Assembly (NCBI RefSeq): GCF_000400465.1 | Contig: NW_008806275.1 | Coordinates: 249,656-281,655, forward strand | DNA from: Wallemia ichthyophaga EXF-994 | Taxonomy: Eukaryota; Fungi; Basidiomycota | DNA length: 32,000 nucleotides | Direction of reading: 5' to 3' | Shown here: positions 413-17,256 of the stretch, in pieces | Layout of the letters: the number at the start of each line of letters is the position of its first letter | Numbering within the stretch: the stretch's first letter is position 1 | Position numbers and translations under genes: made by a program | The notes under the pieces: model-generated | What the model saw: only the letters and a program-made list of their open reading frames with translations | The model's database searches: none | What the model was told of the DNA's origin: nothing

Positions 413-898
413 TCAATTGAAAAGACATGGATCGTATTTGCCAGAGGCGATAAACTTCTCCTTCTCCTCAGGAGTGTATCCACACTTGTCCTTTTGGACC
501 TGGCTTCCTTTCTCCTTGTTTCCACTTTCTGGCTCCTTTGGTGATTCTTTTTGATTTTCCTCTGGTTGCTTTGCTGGTGTTTCTTTTTTATTATCCTCTG
601 GCTGCTTGGATGGCTCAGATGATTCCTTGTTTTCATTACCTTCCTTCTTGCCTTCTTCTGGCTGCTTTGATTCGCCCTTGCTCTCCCCGTTGTTTGGGTA
701 GTTACCGGCACCCCAAAGGTCTTCGATCCACTGACCGCTTTGAATAGCTTTGTCAAGAGATCCGTTTTGGTCAGCACCACGCTTGACCTGGACATTGGTG
801 AGCACGCTTTTGCTTATTATTCAACATATACTCACCTCCATCTTGGCGGATGCGAGGACCGTTACTGCGAGAAGACCGACAATGTAAGTTAATTTCAT
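413..898 (-). CDS. Secreted Kex2-processed precursor 1 (about 145 aa), K/E/Q/P-rich
   Basis: Exon 1 898-836 (MKLTYIVGLLAVTVLASAKME, signal-peptide-like). Intron 835-788 (gtgagt...ctcac...ccag, 48 nt). Exon 2 787-413 is in frame with the ORF-track ORF and begins VKR|GADQ. Contains AIQSGQWIEDLWGAGNY, four [SAP]K[QE]PE[EDS]xxKE units and C-terminal FIASGKYDPCLFN. Confidence 0.8.
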
Positions 899-1222: not shown

Positions 1223-2651
1223 TTAGTGCTCTTCGTTGTGCATGTCTTTCTCGTCATGCTTGTTTTCCTTGTGGTCATCGTGCTCGTGTTTGTCGTCGTG
1301 GTGCTTGTGTTCACCTTTGTGTTCGCCCTTGTGGTTGATTGCCTCCTCGGAGTAGAGCTCTGGGTAGTACTCGCCGCTTGAATTGAGCTCTTTCTCCTCT
1401 TCGTGGGTCAAATGGTGGAAGTCAATGCGACCATCGTGCTGTACTGTGTGAGATAGTAAAGGTACTCAGACGCGCTACTAACCTCATCTCTGGTATGGAG
1501 AGATCTCTTGCCAGCGCCAAAACCTCTAGCACCAGCACCTCTGCTTTCGTGGTGTTTATGTTCATCGTGGCCGTGGTGCTTGTGTTCGCCCTTGTGGTTG
1601 ATAGCCTCCTCGGAGTAGAGCTCTGGGTAGTACTCGCCGCTTGAATTGAGCTCTTTCTCCTCATCGTGGGTCAAGTGGTGGAAGTCAATGCGACCATCGT
1701 GCTGTACTGTGTGAGATAGTAAAGGTACTCAGACGCGCTACTAACCTCATCTCTGGTATGGAGAGATCTCTTGCCAGCGCCAAAACCTCTAGCACCAGCA
1801 CCTCTGCTTTCGTGGTGTTTATGTTCATCGTGGCCGTGGTGCTTGTGTTCGCCCTTGTGGTTGATTGCCTCCTCAGAGTAGAGCTCTGGGTAGTACTCGC
1901 CGCTTGAATTGAGCTCTTTCTCCTCATCGTGGGTCAAGTGGTGGAAGTCAATGCGACCATCGTGCTGTACTGTGTGAGATAGTAAAGGTACTCAGACGCG
2001 CTACTAACCTCATCTCTGGTATGGAGAGATCTCTTGCCAGCGCCAAAACCTCTAGCACCAGCACCTCTGCTTTCGTGGTGTTTATGTTCATCGTGGCCGT
2101 GGTGCTTGTGTTCGCCCTTGTGGTTGATTGCCTCCTCAGAGTAGAGCTCTGGGTAGTACTCGCCGCTTGAATTGAGCTCTTTCTCCTCATCGTGGGTCAA
2201 GTGGTGGAAGTCAATGCGACCATCGTGCTGTACTGTGTGAGATAGTAAAGGTACTCAGACGCGCTACTAACCTCATCTCTGGTATGGAGAGATCTCTTGC
2301 CAGCGCCAAAACCTCTAGCACCAGCACCTCTGCTTTCGTGGTGTTTATGTTCATCGTGGCCGTGGTGCTTGTGTTCGCCCTTGTGGTTGATTGCCTCCTC
2401 AGAGTAGAGCTCTGGGTAGTACTCGCCGCTTGAATTGAGCTCTTTCTCCTCATCGTGGGTCAAGTGGTGGAAGTCAATGCGACCATCGTGCTGTACTGTG
2501 TGAGAGTCTAAAGACAAACAGCATAACAACCTACTTTATCTCTAACACGGAGAGCTCTCTTGCCGGCACCAAAACCTCTGACATCAAGAGGAGCAGCCGT
2601 AGAAACGGAGAGGACGGCAGCGACGACGAGGAGAGCGATTGATGATCTCAT
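1223..2651 (-). CDS. Secreted His-rich Kex2-processed repeat precursor 2 (about 402 aa, 6 exons)
   Basis: Exon 1 2651-2535 (MRSSIALLVVAAVLSVSTAAPLDVRGFGAGKRALRVRDK). Five 44-nt introns: 2534-2491, 2271-2228, 2008-1965, 1745-1702, 1482-1439. Four 219-nt exons each encode the same 73 aa (HDGRIDFHHLTHDEEKELNSSGEYYPELYSEEAINHKGEHKHHGHDEHKHHESRGAGARGFGAGKRSLHTRDE). Terminal exon 1438-1223. The repeat period 263 = 219 + 44, so splicing restores one open frame. Confidence 0.85.
1320..2505. repeat. Near-perfect tandem repeat, 263-bp unit, about 4.5 copies, each unit one exon plus one intron
   Basis: Identical 88-aa read-through ORFs end at 1408, 1671, 1934 and 2197 (period 263). Only a few substitutions separate the units, e.g. 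gatagcctcctcgga vs gattgcctcctcaga. Confidence 0.97.
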
Positions 2652-3037
2652 TGTTGCACGGTGTGTTGTGTTGTAGTATGAAAAGAAGCTTAAAATCCTA
2701 TTTAACTTGCTCGTGCATTCCCCACATTTTAGCGTCAAACTAATTTTTTTCATCTTCAAACATGCATGACTTGAGAGGTATGAATGTCTATCTACATCAT
2801 ATATTGTAGTCAGTTCATGAGATATCAATCAGTGAAAGTAAAGATCATATCGATTATGTCTTGAGGAATTCCAAACCGGTAGAGAACATTCTTAAGTTTA
2901 GAGAATAAAATTTATTAAGGATGCTTAGTACAAATACTCCAATTTAATTCAGTGTGTTGAGTGATCAAGAATGCGAGAAGAGACGAGTGAGAATTGAAGA
3001 AGTCAAGACATCTACCATTGTCCATAACCTATTAAGC

Positions 3038-5250
3038 TTATTGTTGTTGCTGCTGCTGAATTCTTTCCCGTTGGGTTTGGATAGATTGCTGGAGCTGCTC
3101 TTGCTGGTATTGTTGTTGCTCCTTCTCCCAAGCAGTTTCTCTCTTCCATTGAGCTTGACCTTGACCTTTGCCGTGTTCGTAGTTCTCTTCACCCCATAAG
3201 CATTCGAGGTATTGACCAGATTGGACAGCGTGTTCAATCTCTTCATGGCTCATGTGGCAGTGGTTATCGCCATGACCGCCTTTCTCGCCGTGACCATGCT
3301 CGCGACCATGTTCTTCACCGTGGCCGTGGTCGTGACCGTGACCATGCTTTTGCTCTTGCTCATGTCTCTTCCATTGACCTTGAACTTGACCTTGACCTTG
3401 AACTTGACCTTGACCTTGAACTTGACCTTGACCTTGAACTTGACCTTGACCTTGAACTTGACCTTGACCTTGAACTTGACCTTGACCTTGAACTTGACCT
3501 TGACCTTGAACTTGACCTTGACCTTGAACTTGACCTTGACCTTGAACTTGACCTTGACCTTGAACTTGACCTTGACCTTGAACTTGACCTTGACCTTGAA
3601 CTTGACCTTGACCTTGAACTTGACCTTGACCTTGAACTACCTTGCTCGTGACCATCGCCACGCTTGTGGTGATCATGGTGATCATCGCCTTGGTGAGCTT
3701 GCTGGTGTTCTTGTTGTTGGATACGTTCACGTTGGGTTTGGATAGATTGCTGGAGCTGCTCTTGCTGGTATTGTTGTTGCTCCTTCTCCCAAGCAGTTTC
3801 TCTCTTCCATTGAGCTTGACCTTGACCTTTGCCGTGTTCGTAGTTCTCTTCACCCCATAAGCATTCGAGGTATTGACCAGATTGGACAGCGTGTTCAATC
3901 TCTTCATGGCTCATGTGGCAGTGGTTATCGCCATGACCGCCTTTCTCACCGTGACCGTGTGTGTCACCATGCTCGCGACCGTGACCTTGCTCGTGACCAT
4001 CGCCACGCTTGTGGTGATCATGGTGATCATCGCCTTGGTGAGCTTGCTGGTGTTCTTGTTGTTGGATACGTTCACGTTGGGTTTGGATAGATTGCTGGAG
4101 CTGCTCTTGCTGGTATTGTTGTTGCTCCTTCTCCCAAGCAGTTTCTCTCTTCCATTGAGCTTGACCTTGACCTTTGCCGTGTTCGTAGTTCTCTTCACCC
4201 CATAAGCACTCGAGGTATTGACCAGATTGGACGGCGTGTTCAATCTCTTCATGGCTCATGTGGCAGTGGTTATCGCCATGACCGCCTTTCTCGCCGTGAC
4301 CATGCTCGCGACCATGTTCTTCACCGTGGCCGTAGTCGTGACCATGACCCTCAACTTGCTCGTGACCGTGACCACCGCCGCGTTTGTGGTGATCATGATG
4401 ATCATCGCCTTGGTGAGCTTGCTGTTGTTGCTGCTGCTGAATTCTTTCACGTTGGGTTTGGATAGATTGCTGGAGCTGCTCTTGCTGGTATTGTTGTTGC
4501 TCCTTCTCCCAAGCAGTTTCTCTCTTCCATTGAGCTTGACCTTGACCTTTGCCGTGTTCGTAGTTCTCTTCACCCCATAAGCATTCGAGGTATTGACCAG
4601 ATTGGACAGCGTGTTCAATCTCTTCATGGCTCATGTGGCAGTGGTTATCGCCATGACCGCCTTTCTCACCGTGACCGTGTTTGTCACCATGCTCGCGACC
4701 GTGGCCTTGCTCGTGTCTGTGCTCTTCACCGTGGCCATTTCCCTGTCCGAATCCTGAGCGTCTACCGTGCTCGCGATCCTCTTGCTCCTTCTTGTGCTCA
4801 ACGACGGCGTGCTTCTTTGCTTCAAAGTCATCTTGACGCTTGTGGTGGCCTTCGTGACCGCCGTGGACATCGGCTGCAGTGATTCTGTGACCGTGACCAT
4901 CTTCACCACCATGTGGACCAGCTGGTGATCCAATAGGGCCTCCGTGGCCGTGGAAAGGTGCCTTATTGCCCTGCTATAAGCGTGTTAGATGGTTGTGCAG
5001 ATAGTAAGACACCACCCACCATTTCGCCGTGGCCGTGTTGCTGCTCTTCGTGACGCTTTCCTTTAGCGCCCTTTGAAGGTGCAGCTTTGGTTGCTTTTCC
5101 GCCGCCTTTACCCATGTTCTCCATGCCTTGGAGTCCCTTGGTGAGCGGGTCGGTGACTTTCTGGATGAGGCCGCGTTGCTCAAGTGGAGCAGCTGTGGAG
5201 GCTGAGAGAATAGATGCGACGAGAGCGATGAGTGTGATTGAGAACCTCAT
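3038..5250 (-). CDS. Secreted His/Gln/Gly-rich Kex2-processed repeat precursor 3; frameshift at about 3638
   Basis: Exon 1 5250-5020 (MRFSITLIALVASILSASTAAPLEQR...KGKR|HEEQQHGHGEM). Intron 5019-4974 (gtgggt...ctaac...tag). Exon 2 from 4973 is in frame with ORF 3360..4634. Four copies of HCHMSHEEIEHAVQSGQYLECLWGEENYEHGKGQGQAQWKR|ETAWEKEQQQ...; the fourth lies in another frame (stop at 3038). As sequenced it gives about 614 aa ending in an RS tail (stop 3360), or about 720 aa if the frame is restored. Confidence 0.8.
3040..4700. repeat. Four long coding repeat units (about 345-375 bp) within precursor 3
   Basis: Homologous positions at 4627, 4252, 3907 and 3246 (spacings 375, 345, 661). The 661 spacing is not a multiple of 3 and includes the minisatellite. 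Confidence 0.95.
3374..3637. repeat. 18-nt minisatellite (GTTCAAGGTCAAGGTCAA on the minus strand), about 15 copies, encoding VQGQGQ
   Basis: gaac recurs every 18 nt from 3382-3385 to 3634-3637 (252 nt = 14 periods). The array is perfect. Confidence 0.98.
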
Positions 5251-15152: not shown

Positions 15153-17256
15153 ATGGGCAGGAAATCAAGTAATAAAATAACCAAATGTAATCTCAGCCTT
15201 TTCTAACACGCTACACAGAGCAGAAGCAACAGGATCCAGTCCCTCACCAGCCTAGACAAGCTCACGGCACACGAGTCACAAAGAGGAAGGCAAAAGACGC
15301 TGCACTTGACACCTCAAATAAGAAATCAAAGCAGGTGAACCAGGCCAAGCAGCCAAGAAAACCAAAGCAACCTTCTTCTTCTCCTTCGATCCACTCTGAG
15401 GATGAGCAAGATGAGCAAGATGCCTCTGATGATGCCTCCGAAGCCTCCGAATCAGCCTCCGATAACCTCCAGGACTTACAAGGCTCTGATGATGACGACG
15501 AATTTGATCTCGACGCCAGTGACGCTGATGCTCCTCAAAATCCTCCCCAGCAACTCGTCTTCTCTGATCAAGATGATAGCGAGGATGGCTCACAAGACTC
15601 AGACGCAGATTCAGACTCAGACGAGCAATCTGATGTTCAAGGCGCTGAGCCTAGAAGAGAGAAACTCTCCGCCAAAAAATCCAAAAAATTGGATCAAGAA
15701 GCCCTCCTTGAAGCTGCAGACGCAGAAGCAGAAATGATTAGAACTAACATTGCTGGTCTCGAGCCTAACGAGATGGGTGAGGTCGATGATGATATGGTTC
15801 TCCCCACTCAAGAGGATAAGGAGAGAGAGGCTACTGAGGGTGCTGACGCCCAAACCGTTTACGGTCGTATAGGCGATATTGTCCGCATTCTAGGCGACTT
15901 TCATCGCTTTAAGGCTGCTAACAGGAGCAGAGCTGATTACACTGATCAGCTTGTTGCTGATATTGCTAGTTACTATGGCTACACTCCGTTCCTCGCTGAG
16001 AAACTTTTCTCCATGTTCAGTCCTGATGAAGTGAGTAGAGAGTTGTGCATTCGTATCACCTCTCACTCCCTTCTCTCCAGTCTATTGCCTTTTTTGACGC
16101 TAACGAAACTCCACGTCCTGTTACCATTAGAGCTAACACCCTTAAAACCCGCAGGAGGGATCTCGCCCAAGCACTCATTAACAGAGGTGTCTCTCTAGAG
16201 CCAATCGGTAAATGGACCAAAGTTGGTCTACAGATATTCGACTCTAGTGTTCCTGTCGGTGCAACGCCAGAGTATTTGGCTGGTCACTACATGCTCCAAT
16301 CTCCATCATCATTCCTTCCCGTTATGGCACTCGATCCGAAAACAAATGAGCGTGTACTTGACATGGCTAGTGCTCCAGGTGGTAAAACAAGCTACATGTC
16401 CGCTTTGATGCAGAACACGGGTGTCGTTTTCGCCAATGATGCCAACGCTTCAAGGACCAAGAGTCTTAGTGCGAATGTGCACAGGCTTGGCTGCAAGAAT
16501 GTAGTCGTCTGCAGCTACGATGGTAGACAATTCCCCAAGGTTATTGGAGGGTTTGATAGGGTGTGAGTTGGATGGTTGTGTGTTGACGTATTATTCTGAC
16601 GCTTTTCTAGATTGTTAGATGCACCATGCAGTGGTACGGGTGTCGTATCTAAAGACCAGTCGGTAAAGGTGAACAAGGTGAGTGAATGTCTTGAAGATAG
16701 AAGCAAGCTAAAAAGACCCCAGACTGAACGCGACTTTGCACTACTCTCGCATCTTCAGAAACAACTTATTCTCTGTGCGATAGACTCTATTAACACAAAA
16801 TCATCAACTGGCGGATACGTAGTGTATTCGACGTGTTCAGTGACGGTAGAGGAGGATGAGGGAGTGGTAGATTACGCGCTGAAAAAGAGACCAAATGTGA
16901 AACTTGTTCATACTGGGCTCGAATTCGGTGTAGAGGGATTCACAAACATTGGCGGAAAGAAGTTCCATAAGGATATGCACCTCACTAGGCGCTTCTATCC
17001 ACACGTGCACAACATGGAAGGATTCTTTGTGTCCAAGCTGCACGTACTGCCGAGAGCCGTAGTGAAGAACAAGCTGGCGCAGCAGGAGAAGAATGACGCT
17101 GACGATACTGGAGTTCTCGTTGATGACGATGAGGATGAAAAGGAAGCGGGAGATGTCACCTTCAATGATGATGAGGATAAGCAGTTGATGCAGAAAAATC
17201 AACGCCGCCAACAGAAAGCGAAGGGTATTAAGCCATCTAAGCCAACAACCAAGTAA
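15153..17256 (+). CDS. NOP2: 25S rRNA (cytosine-C5) methyltransferase Nop2
   Basis: Starts MGRKS|KQKQQDP, followed by an acidic N-terminal region, YYGYTPFLAEKL, PVTIRANTLKTRRRDLAQAL, ERVLDMASAPGGKT, FDRV|LLDAPCSGTG and VYSTCSV. About four introns. Confidence 0.96.

Follow-up and report, generated by a model that had tools for sequence, protein, structure and literature searches.

A candidate Kex2-processed, histidine-rich polyprotein gene of Wallemia ichthyophaga with an array of intron-containing 263-bp modules

The window analyzed here is a 32,000-nt stretch of contig NW_008806275.1 (positions 249,656 to 281,655, forward strand) of Wallemia ichthyophaga EXF-994, an obligately halophilic basidiomycete with a 9.6-Mb genome (PMC3849046). 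On its minus strand lies the gene J056_002089, which consists of six exons and five 44-nt GT..AG segments, opens with an ATG at 2651 and closes with a TAA stop at 1225-1223. Removal of all five segments yields a single open reading frame (ORF) of 402 codons (coding sequence 1209 nt), while the unspliced sequence contains stops in all frames of every repeat unit. Over all 402 aa, the spliced translation shows 100% identity to EOR04011.1 / XP_009266228.1 (hypothetical protein J056_002089, EXF-994), for which UniRef gives the automatic name ‘Histidine-rich glycoprotein’, and the gene span agrees with that of the public model on scaffold KE007225.1 (GCA_000400465.1). Coordinates on the overlapping locus of that scaffold, L001, convert to the window as 12652 minus the L001 coordinate. 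For comparison we used strains E3P92 (GCA_004917865.1; L002) and E3P86 (L003 and L004), a Logan assembly of SRR25399871 (L005) and two metagenome contigs from the European Nucleotide Archive (ENA; L006 and L007). The features of the gene, with introns and signal peptide as predicted, are as follows.

1223..2651, minus strand: whole coding region of J056_002089; 6 exons, 5 introns, 402 aa, identical to the public protein
2535..2651, minus strand: exon 1, 117 nt; encodes the signal peptide MRSSIALLVVAAVLSVSTA, a short pro-region, and the first of the Lys-Arg sites (GFGAGKR)
2491..2534, minus strand: intron 1, 44 nt (GTAGGT ... CTCAC ... CAG), the ancestral intron
1439..2490, minus strand: four complete 263-bp modules, namely A (2490-2228), B (2227-1965), C (1964-1702) and D (1701-1439); in each, a 219-nt exon coding for 73 aa that end ...GFGAGKRSLHTRDE is followed by a 44-nt intron (GTTAGT ... 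CTCAC ... CAG)
2271-2228, 2008-1965, 1745-1702 and 1482-1439, minus strand: introns 2-5, 44 nt each
1223..1438, minus strand: terminal exon, 216 nt including the stop; fifth copy of the peptide core, then the original His/Asp/Lys-rich tail
2652..2760, minus strand: promoter region; a cross-species conserved block (alignment of the reference, E3P92, a paralogue and L005)
Expected spliced junctions: ...AGAGATGAG/CACGATGGT... and ...AGAGATAAA/CACGATGGT...

The body of the gene is a tandem array. Tandem Repeats Finder reported a repeat at 1317-2505 with a period of 263, 4.5 copies, 99% matches and a score of 2343, and each 263-bp unit divides into a 219-nt exon and a 44-nt intron. Given exon lengths of 117, 219 (four times) and 216 nt, every junction falls in phase 0. 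Units A-C (2490-1702) are mutually 100% identical, unit D differs from them at two sites, both synonymous third positions, and the 263-nt periodicity is perfect across 2505-1613. At the 5' end of the gene, exon 1 shares homology over its final 45 nt with the 3' end of every repeat exon; at the other end, the terminal exon corresponds to the single exon 2 of paralogues and orthologues. An earlier note, made from the sequence of this DNA, had described the repeat as a whole exon-plus-intron module of 219 + 44 bp with stops in every unspliced unit, all junctions in phase 0 and, after removal of 44 nt per unit, a continuous 73-aa repeat. Our frame check gave the same structure, and the spliced product is that of the deposited gene model. 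The span proposed there, 1223-2534, takes in the array and leaves out exon 1 (2535-2651).

Sequence comparison gives good support for the 44-nt segments as genuine introns. Introns 2-5 are identical to one another; intron 1, also 44 nt, shares their last 15 nt (tctcacacagtacag) and matches them at 29 of 44 positions overall, so the shared end and diverged start reported in the earlier note hold. Intron 1 is itself identical in strain E3P92 and in the paralogues. The repeat introns are bordered by GTAGGT or GTTAGT and by CAG, with CTCAC at -14 to -10. Neighboring gene models (single-intron solutions) supplied introns of 46, 47, 48, 51 and 55 nt, with donors GTGAGT, GTGGGT or GTTAGT and with CTAAC, CTGAC or CTCAC about 10 nt before the AG; one of them, a 48-nt intron at 16563-16610 in an RsmB-like methyltransferase gene, is bounded by the continuity of a Pfam profile. 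Both the GTTAGT donor and the CTCAC branch of the repeat introns occur in this small local sample. The segments have the GT..AG borders, branch motif and species length range expected of short fungal introns, and at 44 nt are the shortest local example. The mean for W. ichthyophaga introns is 61 nt (PMC3849046).

The intron position is also kept in orthologues while the interior diverges. In L005 the intron is 44 nt (GTAGGC..CTGAC..AAG), and the frame is kept only if it is spliced; in L006 it is 42 nt (GTGAGT..CTGAC..AAG) and contains an in-frame TGA. Both lie at the RDE/HD codon boundary, as in J056_002089. Intron identity between species is 59-66% (59-64% to the window) versus 81-88% for the first 119 nt of the adjacent exon, whose core has a ratio of non-synonymous to synonymous substitution rates (dN/dS) of 0.04-0.25, indicating purifying selection. 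Within the species, the second intron of E3P92 is again 44 nt, keeps GT and AG, ends in ...ctGacacaTtGcag, and has the more canonical CTGAC in place of CTCAC. Between the E3P92 exon and reference unit D there are six differences, four synonymous and two non-synonymous.

Several observations weigh against splicing. We found no transcript-derived sequence of J056_002089 in the collections searched or in the listed rows of the PMC3849046 supplement, and the gene is absent from the differential-expression table of that study. The reference gene model is an ab initio prediction (GeneMark-ES), and the strain annotations are not independent of it because they were made with MAKER, which was fed the reference proteome as evidence; for the same reason, we dropped the spliced paralogue models P0002, P0005 and P0006 as independent intron support. 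At 44 nt, the segments are 2 nt below any other locally sampled intron, and within the splice consensus both GTTAGT and CTCAC count as minor variants.

Were the segments left unspliced, one would be dealing with a pseudogene in decay or with several short ORFs unrelated to one another, and the gene-finder would have forced the frame of the 402-aa model. Such a reading draws on the failure to find transcript sequence in the collections searched, on a dubious short intron that the same annotation forces into a neighboring gene, and on reference paralogues that carry GTG where ATG is expected. We nevertheless consider it very improbable. Intron position, near-equal length, GT, CT(C/G)AC and AG are kept in three species despite 34-41% divergence of the interior, the downstream exon is under purifying selection in a frame that only splicing joins to the signal peptide, and differences between strains are biased toward synonymous changes.

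Having found good support for a spliced product, we turn to its predicted processing. Lys-Arg (KR) pairs occur at residues 31, 104, 177, 250 and 323 only, all five within GFGAGKR, and neither RR nor KK is present in the 402 aa. These sites split the protein into pieces of 13, 73, 73, 73, 73 and 78 aa, from which the predicted released fragments are an 11-aa piece, four peptides of 71 aa at ~8.16 kDa each and a 78-aa peptide of ~9.5 kDa. Among the KR-delimited fragments, three have the same sequence, another departs from them by 5 substitutions confined to its first 7 residues, and a 42-aa core is shared by the C-terminal one. By heuristic, the N-terminus is a candidate signal peptide, MRSSIALLVVAAVLSVSTA/AP, with an n/h/c layout, a core mean Kyte-Doolittle value of 2.55 and small residues at -3/-1; a heuristic check for transmembrane segments found the remainder strongly hydrophilic. 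Histidine makes up 17.5% of the protein, with HxH and HH clusters, cysteine and tryptophan are absent, the isoelectric point (pI) is about 6, and each unit has one NSS N-glycosylation sequon. The AlphaFold model has a mean predicted local distance difference test score (pLDDT) of 49; it places short helices in the conserved core, and the linkers that surround the KR sites are modeled with low confidence.

The presence of KR in each unit behind a signal peptide makes the product a candidate Kex2-processed polyprotein, a feature that the earlier note did not contain. In a published survey, Kex2-processed repeat proteins (KEPs) are recognized by a signal peptide and at least four fragments delimited by KR or RR, at least three of them similar, with repeats of 3-352 aa accepted (Le Marquer et al. 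2019, PMC6339444). The J056_002089 product contains KR-delimited fragments in that number and at least three similar ones, and with its signal peptide called by heuristic it would class as a KEP on these operational criteria. The survey counts 6 KEPs for W. ichthyophaga, a species-level figure not tied to J056_002089, and place two Wallemia species among the richest producers, W. ichthyophaga being so ranked for its genome size; in its supplementary text, Wallemia appears in the species-overview and top-producer tables only (PMC6339444).

We conclude that J056_002089 probably encodes a secreted pre-pro-polyprotein, built by tandem duplication of a 263-bp segment, whose introns are spliced out and whose product is cut by Kex2 into about five acidic histidine-rich peptides. 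On this model, each intron would be removed by intron-definition splicing, using GTAGGT or GTTAGT as donor, CTCAC as branch 10 nt before CAG, and the distal AG. The 402-aa precursor would enter the secretory pathway, Kex2 would cut after each GFGAGKR, and the cell would release four ~71-aa peptides and one 78-aa peptide. Since each precursor holds several peptide units, we propose that the array raises peptide yield per transcript. The histidine content (17-20%) and pI (5.4-6.2) of the predicted peptides suggest metal binding or another extracellular role.

Two observations count against this model. Kex2 processing is not conserved throughout the family, given that no KR precedes the core in the L005 orthologue, and no Pfam family scored above threshold for the J056_002089 protein; sub-threshold low-complexity matches (DUF6538 at 26.9 bits against a cut-off of 27) were rejected as noise. 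The introns could also be real and the protein remain uncut, as an intact secreted or cell-wall histidine-rich repeat glycoprotein with incidental KR pairs, serving for example in metal or ion binding or in hydration of the halophile’s thick wall. Units of 73 aa are long compared with most KEP peptides, and the histidine-rich, acidic, cysteine-free composition, the NSS in every unit and the UniRef name would suit such a glycoprotein, as would the missing KR in L005 and a mostly low-confidence model suggestive of disorder, as in many wall and matrix proteins. We regard this as unlikely, however, given that each unit has one KR in a constant GFGAGKR context within a poorly modeled Gly/Ala linker, with no other in the 402 aa. 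In L006 and every W. ichthyophaga copy, a KR is retained a few residues ahead of the core, the duplicated block starts just upstream of the KR site, and the KEP survey accepts repeats of 3-352 aa (PMC6339444).

A signal peptide followed by KR-delimited repeats is likewise found in ustiloxin and phomopsin precursors (PMC6339444, PMC7329392), and the gene might accordingly encode the precursor of a heavily modified ribosomal peptide (a peptide that is synthesized ribosomally and modified post-translationally, RiPP) of the ustiloxin/dikaritin or a similar type. Neither the tailoring neighbors nor the short cores of that type were found. Pfam searches of 20 ORFs in the 32-kb window detected no UstYa/DUF3328, tyrosinase, methyltransferase or other tailoring gene, and the neighbors are housekeeping genes (succinate dehydrogenase, sirohaem synthase, RsmB-like, CIA30, cytochrome c chaperone). 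The 73-aa units also far exceed known RiPP cores, and we judge this origin very improbable.

Homologue searches bear on how the proposed polyprotein arose. A word-indexed search with the full protein returned J056_002089 itself only, and an exhaustive phmmer search of 1.84 billion representatives returned only W. ichthyophaga paralogues, one Logan/ENA cluster and one bacterial match (P0004), which we rejected as spurious. A search with the L006 orthologue added nothing further, and the conserved beginning of exon 2 had 0 matches among the metagenome contigs of the Joint Genome Institute (JGI) that were scanned. Among the genomes searched, the family is confined to those of Wallemia type. One ENA protein call (P0007, 147 aa, L006 77-520) reads through the 42-nt intron and renders two TGA codons as Trp; we set it aside as a wrong-genetic-code artefact.

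Both L005 and L006 are syntenic with J056_002089 and have one unit each. L005 sits between the orthologue of a 710-aa neighbor (GME559), downstream of which it lies, and TFIIE-beta; in L006 and L007 the start of a 145-aa neighbor gene comes next. The W. ichthyophaga paralogues are likewise single units, with signal peptide and pro-region, intron, core and a His/Asp/Glu/Lys tail. With one unit in the orthologues, two in E3P92 and five in the EXF-994 reference, the array appears to have grown within W. ichthyophaga. Homology between exon 1 and the repeat starts at RGFGAGKR and runs on through the intron, which delimits the duplicated block: 45 nt from the end of exon 1, the whole 44-nt intron and ~174 nt from the start of exon 2, together 263.

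From these comparisons, the ancestral gene would have had two exons: exon 1 with a signal peptide and short pro-region, an intron of ~44 nt, and exon 2 with an acidic, histidine-rich peptide, HD(G/D)(R/H)IDFHHL(T/S)H(D/E)EEKELNSSG(E/D)YYPEL(Y/F)SEEA..., and a His/Asp/Glu/Lys tail. A tandem duplication in W. ichthyophaga would then have copied the 263-bp segment from just before the Lys-Arg site into exon 2. Because this segment spans the intron, every new unit has an intron of its own, and all junctions are in phase 0 since 219 is divisible by 3. Later amplification, presumably by unequal crossing-over, would have led to the four full modules and terminal unit of the type strain. The exon 1/intron 1 copy has diverged from the internal copies, whereas the internal intron copies are identical, which points to an older first duplication, shared with two-unit E3P92. 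Taken together, these patterns suggest an older first duplication followed by recent growth of the EXF-994 array to four full modules. The identity of introns 2-5 and the recent expansion put forward in the earlier note are borne out (one, two and five units), with the qualification that the identity is not specific to introns, since whole units are identical.

The number of modules in EXF-994 is provisional, because three units are 100% identical and the genome is a short-read SOAPdenovo assembly (K=21) with GeneMark-ES annotation (PMC3849046); both the identity of A-C and the count may in part be products of that assembly. It is possible, and a matter of some weight, that the multi-copy reference array is largely an assembly artefact, the true module number being lower or higher and the A-C identity reflecting collapse or refilling of reads. 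Besides the K=21 short-read assembly, this possibility draws on the 893 bp of perfect periodicity, beyond the length of any read, on the implausible 31-34-nt ‘intron’ that a neighboring gene needs within a perfect microsatellite, and on downstream gene models that are fusions, local repeats being badly resolved. E3P92, though its assembly was reference-guided, came out with two units only. Against an artefact, that separate assembly, built from different reads, contains at least one full extra module complete with exon, KR site and a second 44-nt intron, and unit D and the terminal unit have distinguishing substitutions that anchor both ends of the array. Moreover, the question bears on copy number alone and not on the nature of the feature.

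Since the extra E3P92 module bears substitutions of its own, module duplication is real. The E3P92 contig runs unbroken across the gene with two units although the assembly was guided by the five-unit reference, which favors a real copy-number difference. The copy-number polymorphism anticipated in the earlier note fits these counts, subject to the caveat that E3P92, too, is a short-read assembly. Over the promoter and 5' part of the gene, E3P92 and the reference disagree at 40 of 812 positions, or ~5% (L002 1-812 versus window 2909-2098), compared with a genome-wide density of single-nucleotide polymorphisms of 0.13-0.40% (PMC6738226). This more than 10-fold excess marks the locus as unusually variable. 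A few kb downstream of the array gene, E3P92/reference identity is ~99%.

In strain E3P86, a copy adjoining a hydrolase gene (L003 303-742, L004 304-755) carries sequence of the internal-unit type (…HHDDEHKHHESRG). Such a copy suggests exchange between the array gene and its paralogues, by recombination or gene conversion, unless the short-read assembly is chimeric at this point.

Two ideas about splice regulation, both from the earlier note, fared less well than the structure itself. A proximal CAG lies 5 nt upstream of the acceptor, and its use would indeed shift the frame to a stop, adding TACAG and reaching TGA after 11 codons. It is, however, absent from E3P92 intron 2 and from both orthologues, and it lies only 5 nt past the likely branch A. 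An acceptor 5 nt from the branch adenosine is probably too close for use. Being missing in relatives and adjoining the branch A, the site is unlikely to be a conserved off switch. Exon skipping would keep the frame, as proposed, though tuning of peptide copy number in this way is speculative, and skipping is rare in the species: the whole W. ichthyophaga transcriptome yielded one exon-skipping event, with intron retention and alternative 3' sites dominating (PMC3849046). A broader version, in which the cell makes use of the modules, is highly improbable in our view. Variable donor/acceptor pairing or the frame-breaking proximal AG would set the number of peptides per transcript, the peptides would form a Wallemia-specific metal- or ion-handling class tied to brine, and dose would be tuned by splicing together with copy-number change (263-bp modules, 3-kb segmental repeats).

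KR-delimited repeat precursors are widespread in fungi (PMC6339444, PMC7329392). The predicted product resembles known KEPs described there, such as Saccharomyces cerevisiae MF-alpha-1 and Ustilago maydis Rep1, in its candidate signal peptide and at least three near-identical KR-delimited units; in these proteins, too, repeat number varies between relatives, and W. ichthyophaga is among the KEP-rich species. Unlike them, J056_002089 has long (71-78 aa), acidic, histidine-rich units with an intron in each, cleavage is predicted only, and the searches returned its family from Wallemia-like genomes only. The copying of an intron already present, when part of a gene is duplicated internally, is a recognized process (Gao and Lynch 2009, cited in the review PMC3443670), and the present locus is like that process, and like tandem exon duplication, in that the duplication spans an intron, intron number rises with the repeats and splice signals are inherited. 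It departs from it in the four or five copies of the block instead of two, in the setting of ~45-55-nt introns and a compact genome, and in the coincidence of the block with a proteolytic processing module.

Histidine-rich secreted proteins that bind metal include histidine-rich glycoprotein, histatins and fungal zincophores such as Pra1. The J056_002089 product is similar to these in its predicted secretion, its 17-20% histidine and its HxH/HH clusters, but it has no detectable homology to them, and the likeness is compositional only. A full-text literature search found no paper joining Wallemia and “histidine-rich,” and the family and its one-intron-per-repeat architecture appear to be undescribed. 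The gene model itself is already public, and the feature is an instance of a known process, with no new mechanism.

Given the proposed history, the locus offers a clean, datable case of how a peptide polyprotein may be built up, with one unequal duplication enclosing processing site, intron and core, and subsequent amplification within one species. Intron number would have risen fivefold through plain duplication in a very compact fungal genome. The family would also add a histidine-rich, lineage-restricted member to the KEPs, a class with mostly unknown functions. Finally, this is a locus where the W. ichthyophaga reference assembly and several gene models need checking.

J056_002089 and its two neighboring genes of 710 and 145 aa form a small cluster, being adjacent, secreted and lineage-restricted. 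Upstream, GME559 (3038-5250, minus strand) encodes a secreted repeat protein of 710 aa, rich in His and Gln, whose repeats measure 345/375 bp and which has HHKRG sites; it was reported as up-regulated at 30% NaCl, from 10.5 to 25.0 reads per kilobase per million mapped reads (RPKM), in the 2013 paper (PMC3849046). Its annotated coding sequence requires a 31-34-nt GT..AG ‘intron’ inside a perfect 18-bp microsatellite of 14.7 copies (especially 3374-3638), and 53 equivalent intron placements restore the frame, an indication that the frame fix was forced or the microsatellite assembled wrongly. Downstream, a 145-aa secreted protein (413-898, minus strand) has one 48-nt intron with a CTCAC branch, and its motif AIQSGQWIEDLWGAGNY is common to the repeats of the 710-aa protein (AVQSGQYLECLWGEENY).

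Immediately to the left of window position 1 (L001 12706-19026), the reference has ~2.5 copies of a 3075-bp segment that is present once in E3P92. It comprises the terminal unit, its 3' flank, the 145-aa gene, TFIIE-beta and the 5' part of a single-unit paralogue. In this region the public models of 534 and 528 aa, which include 1146 nt of ‘introns’, each combine three genes into one, and the reference paralogues have GTG at the position of the array gene’s ATG.

The conserved block of the promoter region is a ~35-nt sequence, TTAGTTTGACGCTAAAAyGTGGGGAATGCAyGAGCA, followed by TAAATAG. It is common to W. ichthyophaga and L005 (L005 1180-1289) within intergenic DNA that has otherwise diverged, and it includes a TGACG half-site and a GTGGGG motif.

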